DNA of 64,000 nt from Orbicella franksi. Its lineage: Eukaryota. The DNA lies in NCBI GenBank assembly GCA_964199315.1, contig OZ116703.1, positions 19,406,001 through 19,470,000 on the forward strand, given 5' to 3'. Below are positions 52,550 through 53,801 of the stretch, in pieces (positions within the stretch are counted from its first letter, which is position 1; each line of letters starts with the position of its first letter). Below the pieces are notes generated by a model. That model did not search any database. It had not been told where the DNA came from and worked only from the letters and a program-made list of their open reading frames with translations. Made by a program: the position numbers and the translations under genes.

Positions 52550-52693
52550 AAGGTTATAAGGGGCTGTTCTGCTGCAGTAAATTATCTCTCGCTCATTTCT
52601 TCTTGATGTCTTTTCAAATCGACCGCAGAGTGGGCAAAGGCTTGGCGCTAGTCTCTTTCCCAGTCCTTTCACGGTAAGAAACAAGATGGCGGC
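52550..52693. promoter_or_regulatory. Putative bidirectional promoter LYRM7/CWC2
   Basis: Divergent ATGs are 137 bp apart (52549 and 52686). YY1-type motif AAGATGGCGGC at 52683-52693 overlaps the CWC2 start codon. Confidence 0.7.
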
Positions 52694-53801
52694 TGCGAGC
52701 ACAACAAAGAAAGCAAGAAAGCAACTTTCCCAGCCGGTCGGTCCGCAAAAATCCGAGAATTCACGCGGGACGACGTACAACATTTGGTATAACAAGAATG
52801 CAGGAGAAAGATGTCATTCTAGAGAAAAAACTCAAGCTACTACTCGATGTAATATAGCAAAAGATAGTGGAATCACCAAAGGCAGTACAAGACAATGGGA
52901 TGGGACATTCATTTGCTTAAAATTTGCCAGGGGTTGTTGCCCGTTTGGATACGATTGTTCCTGGATTCACACTTTACCTTCGGACGAGTTCGAATCAAAT
53001 TTAGAAACAACGAAAGACTGCTTTGGTCGAGAAAAGCACGAGCATGTTAGAGACGACCAGAGTGGTGTGGGTTCTTTTTCAGCTGACCCGCAGACAGCGA
53101 GAACTCTTTATGTTGGCGGGATATCCGTGACGTCTGACCTCCAATCCGTTGTTTATAAGCACTTTATAGAGTGGGGAGAGATTGATAACGTCAGGGTGTT
53201 GCATTCAAAAGGTGTGGCTTTTGTACGCTACAGAAACCGTTCAAATGCGGAATTTGCCAAAGAAGCCATGCAGAATCAAGCTCTGGAGAACAATGAGATT
53301 TTGAATGTAAGGTGGGCTACAGATGATCCCAACCCTTGGATTCAGAAACGGAAAGTGGAAAGTAGCAAAGAAAAGCTTGCTACTGCAATATTACAGGACT
53401 ATGATGGGCCTCTAAGTAACCAAGGTGATGTCCTGGAAGGCCATCTCCCTCCACAGAAGCGTCGGTATCCGGATCGTGACTCAGAAAATAATGGAGAGGC
53501 AGTAGGTTACTATCCAGACACTGATAATCAGTATTCAGAAGTTAATATCAAATCTGATACTCAGGTACCTCAGTCCCCTGCCATGATGAGTTATAGAACG
53601 GCCAGCGACTCACAGCCAAAAACTCTGTCTGATCTTATTAAATGGTCAAAAGAGCAGGCTTCACTCAACAGAATAACTGAATCACCACACTCAAAACACA
53701 TAGGCATGGTGGTAACTGGTGGGAAGAAAAATGAAGGAAGCTTTTCACTTGTTTCTGCCTATGATTCTTCTTCAGATGATGAGAGTGGAGACAAAAGCTA
53801 A
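52686..53801 (+). CDS. CWC2: Intronless pre-mRNA splicing factor CWC2-type protein (Torus + CCCH zinc finger + RRM), 371 aa
   Basis: Motifs colinear with yeast Cwc2: YNIWYNK, C-x7-C-x5-C-x3-H (CLKFARGCCPFGYDCSWIH), DCFGREK, GVGSF, TLYVGGI (RNP2), KGVAFVRY (RNP1), NAEFAKEAMQNQ, VRWATDDPNP. Confidence 0.9.
   Translation: MAAASTTKKARKQLSQPVGPQKSENSRGTTYNIWYNKNAGERCHSREKTQATTRCNIAKDSGITKGSTRQWDGTFICLKFARGCCPFGYDCSWIHTLPSDEFESNLETTKDCFGREKHEHVRDDQSGVGSFSADPQTARTLYVGGISVTSDLQSVVYKHFIEWGEIDNVRVLHSKGVAFVRYRNRSNAEFAKEAMQNQALENNEILNVRWATDDPNPWIQKRKVESSKEKLATAILQDYDGPLSNQGDVLEGHLPPQKRRYPDRDSENNGEAVGYYPDTDNQYSEVNIKSDTQVPQSPAMMSYRTASDSQPKTLSDLIKWSKEQASLNRITESPHSKHIGMVVTGGKKNEGSFSLVSAYDSSSDDESGDKS

Follow-up and report, generated by a model that had tools for sequence, protein, structure and literature searches.

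The 64,000-nucleotide stretch of the Orbicella franksi genome considered here (assembly GCA_964199315.1, contig OZ116703.1, abbreviated C6, positions 19406001-19470000; the whole of this stretch is called the window below) carries, at 52686-53801 of its plus strand, a gene for a stand-alone CWC2 protein. The CWC2/Cwf2 family comprises NineTeen-complex-related spliceosome proteins, and the window gene is, as read from the sequence, a single unbroken and intronless open reading frame (ORF) of 371 amino acids (aa) that runs from ATG to TAA. Its product consists of a Torus domain that encloses a CCCH zinc finger, an RNA recognition motif (RRM) and a long C-terminal tail with two short conserved motifs (Table 1). 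The same genome also encodes RBM22, the protein that occupies this place in the human spliceosome, and a second, differently built CWC2.

The Torus domain reached 104.7 bits with the Pfam profile PF16131, which is above the curated threshold (cut-off 29), and the part of it that lies within aa 50-120 was predicted by AlphaFold2 with a local distance difference test score (pLDDT) of ~88-95. In an alignment of 37 family sequences, the zinc ligands C85, C91 and H95 are invariant and C77 is nearly so, and the two ribonucleoprotein motifs of the RRM, RNP1 and RNP2, are intact and fall on invariant or nearly invariant columns. The RRM itself was matched by the Pfam profile RRM_1 over aa 154-205 (E 6e-9) and is followed by a long helix (aa 217-238), and the connector motifs D-C-F-G-R-E and D-D-x-x-G-V-G-S-F are conserved both in a sequence search of the PDB (see below) and in the family alignment. 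Pfam gave no match in the window protein for STL11_N (PF21369), the zinc-binding N-terminal domain of Ecm2, Slt11 and RBM22, and none for a WW domain; the orthologue's RefSeq model is likewise 371 aa long. An ORF of 110 aa on the opposite strand (52463-52795) has no support of any kind and was taken as a chance occurrence.

Table 1. The CWC2 gene of the window, the parts of its product, and the flanking features (positions are those of the window).
Feature	Position	Strand	Evidence and remarks
Complete intronless coding sequence (CDS) of a WW-less CWC2 (371 aa + stop)	52686..53801	+	ORF, Pfam, PDB search, RefSeq match
Torus domain, aa 7-115	52704..53030	+	Pfam PF16131, E 5.2e-30
CCCH zinc finger C77-x7-C85-x5-C91-x3-H95, inside the Torus domain	52914..52970	+	Read from the sequence and the alignment
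RRM, aa 139-213 (RNP2 LYVGGI, RNP1 KGVAFVRY)	53100..53324	+	Pfam, AlphaFold2, sequence
Conserved helical motif (K-T-L-S-D-L-I-K-W-S-K-E-Q, aa 312-327) of a tail that is disordered elsewhere	53619..53666	+	Predicted helix 314-327, pLDDT ~75
C-terminal acidic motif L-V-S-A-Y-D-S-S-S-D-D-E, aa 355-366	53748..53783	+	Tail comparison
Palindromic host repeat resembling a miniature inverted-repeat transposable element (MITE), ~480 bp upstream of the ATG	52059..52210		58-nt arms, 81% complementary
LYRM7-like exon, conserved upstream neighbour	49717..50013		tblastx to hexacoral contig L010; a Complex1_LYR gene is likewise placed in coral contig L014
DXO/RAI1 multi-exon gene, conserved downstream neighbour	55979..60776	+	Collinear tblastx blocks with L010; PF08652 RAI1 ORFs after CWC2 in L010 and L014
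Ankyrin-repeat (GPANK1-like) gene, conserved neighbour	62026..62808	-	Comparison with L010 and L014

The identity of the protein was established by several comparisons. The PDB search, over aa 8-239, returned a spliceosome chain of a thermophilic fungus at 6.2e-66 and Schizosaccharomyces pombe Cwf2 at 5.9e-62, with Saccharomyces cerevisiae Cwc2 at ~1e-31 and human RBM22 at 1.1e-10, the latter for the finger-RRM half alone. An AlphaFold2 model, built on the family alignment, has a pLDDT of ~84-96 over most of aa 50-120 and 130-210 and a mostly disordered tail with one helix at 314-327; when it was compared with the PDB by Foldseek, the best 13 matches were all Cwf2 or Cwc2 chains (E 5e-24 to 2e-11), and RBM22 chains followed at ~1e-7 with a template modelling (TM) score of ~0.2. 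In two family trees the protein falls inside a clade of WW-less CWC2 sequences, with support of 100/92 and 97/91. In family identity, fold and gene integrity, the window gene is thus a genuine CWC2/Cwf2 gene of the WW-less kind. The original prediction, made from the nucleotide sequence, had described a stand-alone CWC2 that follows the yeast protein motif by motif (Torus, CCCH, RRM), lacks the Ecm2/Slt11-like N-terminal region and is intronless among intron-rich neighbours. All of this was borne out, i.e., by the Pfam and PDB matches (6e-66 to 1e-31), by the missing STL11_N match and by the single ORF next to multi-exon genes, and the trees place the gene inside the CWC2 clade. The label “fungal-type” turned out to be too narrow, since WW-less CWC2 proteins are also found in choanoflagellates, Fonticula, Entamoeba, Cyanophora and a euglenid.

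Among the proteins of known structure, the closest are S. pombe Cwf2/Prp3 and its orthologue in a filamentous fungus (3jb9_Y, 9esh_P, 9l5r_0), which have the same Torus-CCCH-RRM core (aa 8-239, ~45-50% identity) and the same predicted fold (Foldseek E 5e-24 to 5e-21), and likewise have no WW domain. They differ in that the N-terminal lead of the coral protein is shorter (the fungal proteins start ~40 aa earlier) and its tail sequence is specific to cnidarians; its acidic L-V-x-Y-x-S-D-D motif is of the kind present in the tails of other fungi. The coral gene is, moreover, an animal gene that is intronless and has a second CWC2 paralogue in its genome. S. cerevisiae Cwc2 (3u1l, 3tp2, 5gm6_R) has the same three modules and fold (Foldseek 1e-17 to 1e-15, TM on target 0.65-0.69) at ~31-33% identity, and its partner in yeast, Ecm2, has diverged further from RBM22 than has the coral protein of that name. 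With human RBM22 the window protein shares the CCCH finger and RRM half (E 1e-10 over aa 74-215), but human RBM22 has STL11_N and no complete Torus domain, while the window protein has a complete Torus domain and no STL11_N. The record XP_020621750.1, “pre-mRNA-splicing factor cwc2-like [Orbicella faveolata]”, represents this gene in a congeneric species, without substantive difference (371 aa, four residue differences, a common 90% cluster).

Both the RBM22 gene and the second CWC2 gene were located by profile scans of the assembly. The RBM22/Slt11 N-domain profile matched C10:30863143-30863280, within a canonical multi-exon RBM22 gene at C10:30861000-30867700 (+) (L008:3250-9700) with at least eight exon-like pieces in the surrounding 10 kb; two of the pieces are nearly identical to human RBM22 (1.7e-26 and 3.4e-29), and the exons encode its zinc-binding N-domain as well as its CCCH finger and RRM. 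The Torus profile identified the second CWC2 at C13:1571427-1573606 (+) (L007:5428-7606). Five exons (L007: 5428-5953, 6264-6438, 6637-6814, 7245-7319 and 7517-7606), spliced at phase-compatible GT-AG sites, make up a model that covers the gene without its 3′ exons, and at least four introns are found in this modelled 5′ part. The spliced product carries a WW domain at its N-terminus, ahead of Torus, CCCH and RRM, and is 77% identical to a “pre-mRNA-splicing factor cwc2-like” of Montipora foliosa, 58% to a “Pre-mRNA-splicing factor cwc2” of Trichoplax sp. H2, 47% to cwc2 of Sycon ciliatum and 42% to the window protein; it is the orthologue of the Trichoplax and Sycon genes. The coral thus encodes RBM22 and two CWC2 genes, a co-occurrence that is new here. 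It had been proposed that the coral CWC2 might be used alongside or instead of RBM22; with a canonical RBM22 gene on C10, it would be alongside and not instead. Two weaker matches of the Torus profile were also recorded. One (C12:2972324-2972533, minus strand, 4.4e-5) covers only the CCCH finger of a 265-aa ORF rich in Ser, Asp and Glu (L003 ORF 1270-2067), probably an unrelated CCCH protein; the other (C15:14530398-14530547, plus strand, L005, 3e-4) is a Torus-like stretch with two in-frame TAA stops, which may be a decayed fragment of the CWC2 family or a chance match.

The window gene is expressed, being present in RNA runs, and is under purifying selection. For positions 52300-54300 of the window, 0.71-0.88 of the sampled words are present in 14 runs registered as RNA (poly(A) libraries included), which stem from at least 10 studies, and public run assemblies contain contigs, 1.9-2.7 kb long, that follow the genome collinearly through the CDS and its two flanks (for the local comparison of contigs, the window flanks 50001-53844 and 53881-57000 were used). 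ORFs on contigs of three public runs encode a protein identical to that of the window. The ends of public contigs at 52045 and 52197-52202 were considered as a transcription start and rejected, as they lie inside the arms of the high-copy MITE and are probably assembly breaks. Relative to the orthologue in the coral contig L014, the overall dN/dS is 0.26, with 0.19 for the core and 0.35 for the tail (dS 0.20). Expression and dN/dS had both been put forward as checks of the original prediction, and both point to an expressed, constrained gene.

A search of 1.84 billion representative proteins with the window protein returned 319 proteins at E<=1e-30, in which only three representatives belong to the window's own clade and are followed by a gap from 1e-105 to 1e-64. 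Orthologues in Hexacorallia fall into 42 clusters of one clade (100/99), which splits into stony corals and a sea-anemone-like group with Nematostella; every orthologue that was called on a genomic contig is a single ORF. The other WW-less sequences with names come from many fungal phyla, from Fonticula alba, from two choanoflagellates (Monosiga and Salpingoeca), and from Entamoeba, Cyanophora and the euglenid Ploeotia. The WW-type, in turn, was found under the holozoan names Chromosphaera (an ichthyosporean), Sycon, Trichoplax, Nematostella, Acropora, Montipora and Oculina, and otherwise in Phytophthora, Ectocarpus, Toxoplasma, Neospora and Vitrella. Proteins of this type (e.g., those of Trichoplax sp. 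H2, Sycon ciliatum, Acropora/Montipora, Toxoplasma and Phytophthora) share the Torus-CCCH-RRM core at ~35-42% identity and carry the same database name, but differ from the window protein by an N-terminal WW domain, several introns, a tail without the terminal acidic motif and their position in a separate clade (97/91 to 100/92). No bilaterian name appeared among the named matches of either type, and a homologue search with Monosiga cwc2 gave 18 matches under a word filter and no further holozoan copies. Together with the trees (see below), this distribution suggests that CWC2 comprises two ancient lineages that were lost differentially, and hexacorals are the only group seen here with both types. 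In some protist relatives (P0187, P0212, P0217, P0238 and P0270) the WW domain follows the RRM rather than preceding the Torus domain, and the WW module has therefore moved or been gained more than once.

That animals other than bilaterians possess a stand-alone CWC2 can already be read from database annotation, since the WW-type orthologues of Sycon, Trichoplax, Nematostella, Acropora and Montipora are named cwc2 or cwc2-like there. Full-text literature searches found no paper discussing CWC2 in animals. A survey of the spliceosome in LECA, the last ancestor common to all eukaryotes (MBE 2023), lists RBM22 and starts from human proteins, hence CWC2 was not covered by it. The original prediction had allowed that CWC2 might turn out to be already documented and vertically inherited in invertebrates; for the family as a whole this is so, and for the window paralogue only in part.

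The tail of the protein offers a further comparison. The helical motif at aa 312-327 is kept in all cnidarian orthologues, and fungal tails are loosely similar to it, as judged by eye only. All cnidarian orthologues also end with L-V-S-A-Y-D-S-S-S-D-D-E or near variants of it, and acidic endings resembling that of the window protein are found in Polychytrium, Aspergillus, Cladobotryum, Pseudozyma, Rhizophagus, Salpingoeca and other members of the choanoflagellate clade. The strict pattern is present in 10 of the 147 non-cnidarian representatives scanned, with looser variants, seen by eye, in more, and in none of the WW-type tails that were inspected. The motif, as far as the sequences tell, adds a resemblance that is full-length and at the level of the subtype; it cannot separate vertical from horizontal origin, because both holozoan and holomycotan members carry it.

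The relationships of the gene were followed in two trees. In the larger (94 rows, 328 columns, IQ-TREE with LG+C20 and posterior mean site frequencies (PMSF), the bootstrap of which had not fully settled), the WW-less clade has support of 100/92 and the cnidarian clade within it 100/99; the cnidarians lie outside a clade of Dikarya and Mucoromycota (99/94). In the smaller tree of 40 rows with named taxa, the WW clade matches the species tree, with Chromosphaera followed by Sycon, Trichoplax and the corals, the WW-less clade has support of 97/91, and the cnidarians lie outside a clade of Dikarya, Glomeromycota and Mortierellomycota (96/88). Holozoa are present on both sides of the branch between the two types (97/91 to 100/92), i.e., choanoflagellates and the hexacoral gene on the WW-less side and the ichthyosporean, sponge, placozoan and coral WW genes on the other. 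In pairwise comparisons the window protein is 49-50% identical to the proteins of Basidiobolus and Polychytrium, 46% and 40% to those of two choanoflagellates and 42% to the paralogue on C13. The branches of choanoflagellates, Fonticula and Entamoeba measure 1.0-1.6, and since they are so long the placement of these groups is unsafe. Alternative positions were compared by the approximately unbiased (AU) test. With the cnidarians held together with choanoflagellates, the 94-row tree was 3.0 log-likelihood units (lnL) better than the one from the free search (p-AU 0.54), and the 40-row tree was 13.8 lnL worse and not rejected (p-AU 0.13); with the cnidarians held with the holozoan WW-type genes, the cost was 48.7 lnL (p-AU 0.025).

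The surroundings of the gene were compared with those of its orthologues. It lies 19.4 Mb into a large contig of the 497-Mb, 805-contig assembly, is the only copy of the window CWC2 in that assembly, and has a guanine-cytosine (GC) content (0.40) like that of its surroundings. The MITE upstream of it (~190 bp) is a dispersed repeat, for which a first look gave at least 1313 candidates over the chromosomes, and copies of 85-89% identity are found on many contigs. The order LYRM7-CWC2-DXO-ankyrin (GPANK1-like) is kept in the coral contig L014, with a CWC2 that is 88.6% identical, and in the hexacoral contig L010, with one that is 54% identical, and in both CWC2 is again a single ORF. Between LYRM7 and CWC2, L014 contains an element that bears a reverse transcriptase (ORFs 5485-6900), and in L010 the orientation of the LYRM7 exon relative to CWC2 is inverted compared with the window.

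Several explanations can be considered for a gene of this type in a coral. The gene might be a contaminant or an assembly artefact whose source is an organism, fungal or endolithic, associated with the coral holobiont; endolithic fungi do live in coral samples, and the best matches outside the cnidarians are fungal. Its depth within a large contig and its flanks of a coral MITE family and animal genes, the equal gene order in two other hexacoral assemblies, orthologues that follow hexacoral relationships and a GC content that matches the surroundings all speak against this, and contamination, ruled out by the synteny and the flanking host repeats, deserves practically no credence. The argument of the original prediction that host-type flanks speak against contamination was thereby strengthened, by genome-wide copies of the MITE and by the conserved gene order. 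It is also very improbable that the gene is a lineage-specific retrocopy of the resident WW-type CWC2 that lost its WW exon and diverged fast, with a convergent resemblance to fungi. An intronless gene and an intron-bearing family member in one genome are what such an event would leave, but joining the cnidarian WW-less clade to the holozoan WW-type is disfavoured by the AU test (48.7 lnL, p-AU 0.025), the branch between the types is well supported (100/92, 97/91), the window protein is closer to proteins of early fungi (49-50%) than to the supposed parent (42%), and its C-terminal motif is shared with fungi and Salpingoeca and not found in WW-type tails. A poly(A) remnant and target-site duplications, the usual marks of a processed retrogene, would not be expected to survive in a gene older than the spread of the hexacorals.

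There remain descent and transfer. According to the latter, a WW-less CWC2 would have reached an ancestor of Hexacorallia, the donor being an early-diverging fungus, a holomycotan of the nucleariid kind or some other opisthokont protist; it would have landed between LYRM7 and DXO and been kept as an extra factor beside the native WW-type CWC2 and RBM22. The free trees group the gene with Fungi and Fonticula (80/88; 94/99), its best pairwise matches are Basidiobolus and Polychytrium ahead of the choanoflagellates and its own paralogue, it is intronless and, within animals, was seen only in hexacorals, the native WW-type follows the animal tree so that the WW-less copy is the odd one out, and a single gain is more parsimonious than some five losses. 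On the other hand, the gene is never nested in a sampled fungal lineage and is excluded from the crown fungi, a position as sister to the choanoflagellates is as good or not rejected (p-AU 0.54, 0.13), attraction artefacts are likely with branches of 1.0-1.6 for choanoflagellates, Fonticula and Entamoeba, a core spliceosome subunit is a priori a poor candidate for a move into an animal, and loss of CWC2-family genes is evidently common in animals, no bilaterian being found among the WW-type matches. A transfer is a possible but rather unlikely origin; if true, an animal would here have taken over a core cofactor of the spliceosome's active site from elsewhere, a rare event, and purifying selection would have maintained it for hundreds of millions of years alongside the native WW-type CWC2 and RBM22. 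We consider it probable, if far from certain, that the WW-less CWC2 is an ancient paralogue that was vertically inherited and retained in hexacorals. The paralogue would have been present in the choanozoan or opisthokont ancestor, kept in Hexacorallia and lost in the other sampled animal lineages, and its intronless state would have been fixed before the split of stony corals and sea anemones, probably via replacement by a retrocopy or else by wholesale intron loss. Vertical retention is favoured because the WW-less type occurs in choanoflagellates, because the choanoflagellate-sister topology is not rejected and scores best in the larger data set, and because the hexacoral clade never nests within a sampled fungal lineage; vertical descent and the retroposition step are both inferred. 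Several observations weigh against this preference: among animals the WW-less gene is seen only in hexacorals; given the three representatives of its clade and the gap that follows them, vertical descent needs ~5 or more independent losses, and the intron loss requires one more event; the cnidarians group with fungi and Fonticula in the 94-row tree (weakly, 80/88) and are sister to Fonticula (80/77) within a Holomycota group (94/99) in the 40-row tree; and taxon names were available for about one third of the sequences in the trees. As to the origins that the original prediction had offered, i.e., an ancestral gene lost elsewhere or a horizontal or retro-acquisition, the ancestral one is thus favoured and a retrocopy of the WW paralogue disfavoured (p-AU 0.025), and the data neither support nor exclude a horizontal one.

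The function of the window protein can be approached by analogy. In S. pombe, Cwf2 co-exists with the RBM22-like protein Cwf5, and in humans only RBM22 is found. Since the coral CWC2 likewise co-exists with a protein of the RBM22/Ecm2 type, its arrangement resembles that of S. pombe (Cwf2 and Cwf5) more than that of humans. By homology, the coral CWC2 would join the activated spliceosome (Bact to P complexes). In spliceosomes that are activated or catalytic it would stabilise the intron close to the 5′ splice site as well as the U6 internal stem-loop, with RBM22 at its side in the way that Cwf5 accompanies Cwf2 in fission yeast. Its tail, which is disordered and acidic, may serve as a tether to the Prp19 complex. 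Both the spliceosomal role and the tether to the Prp19 complex (also termed NTC) are what we infer from the homologous proteins. RBM22 performs the job of stabilising U6 and the intron, and has been equated with yeast Cwc2/Ecm2 (PMC13601561; PMC11833078).

The window gene itself is ordinary in sequence and already annotated as “cwc2-like”, and the family to which it belongs is well characterised; its value is for this reason comparative and not mechanistically new. In the structural literature on the spliceosome, animal RBM22 is simply taken to replace yeast Cwc2 and Ecm2 together (PMC11833078, PMC13601561). Hexacorals encode RBM22 and two distinct CWC2 proteins, and the WW-type is also kept in sponges and placozoans, so that the RBM22-only state is a derived one of bilaterians, or at least of the usual models, and not animal-wide. 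As fission yeast already has CWC2 and an RBM22-like protein together, the point is a useful rather than a startling one. Hexacorals thus keep splicing parts that vertebrates have lost, and Nematostella and Exaiptasia are tractable systems in which CWC2 and RBM22 may be followed together at the catalytic centre, whether they act side by side, compete, or serve different classes of introns.

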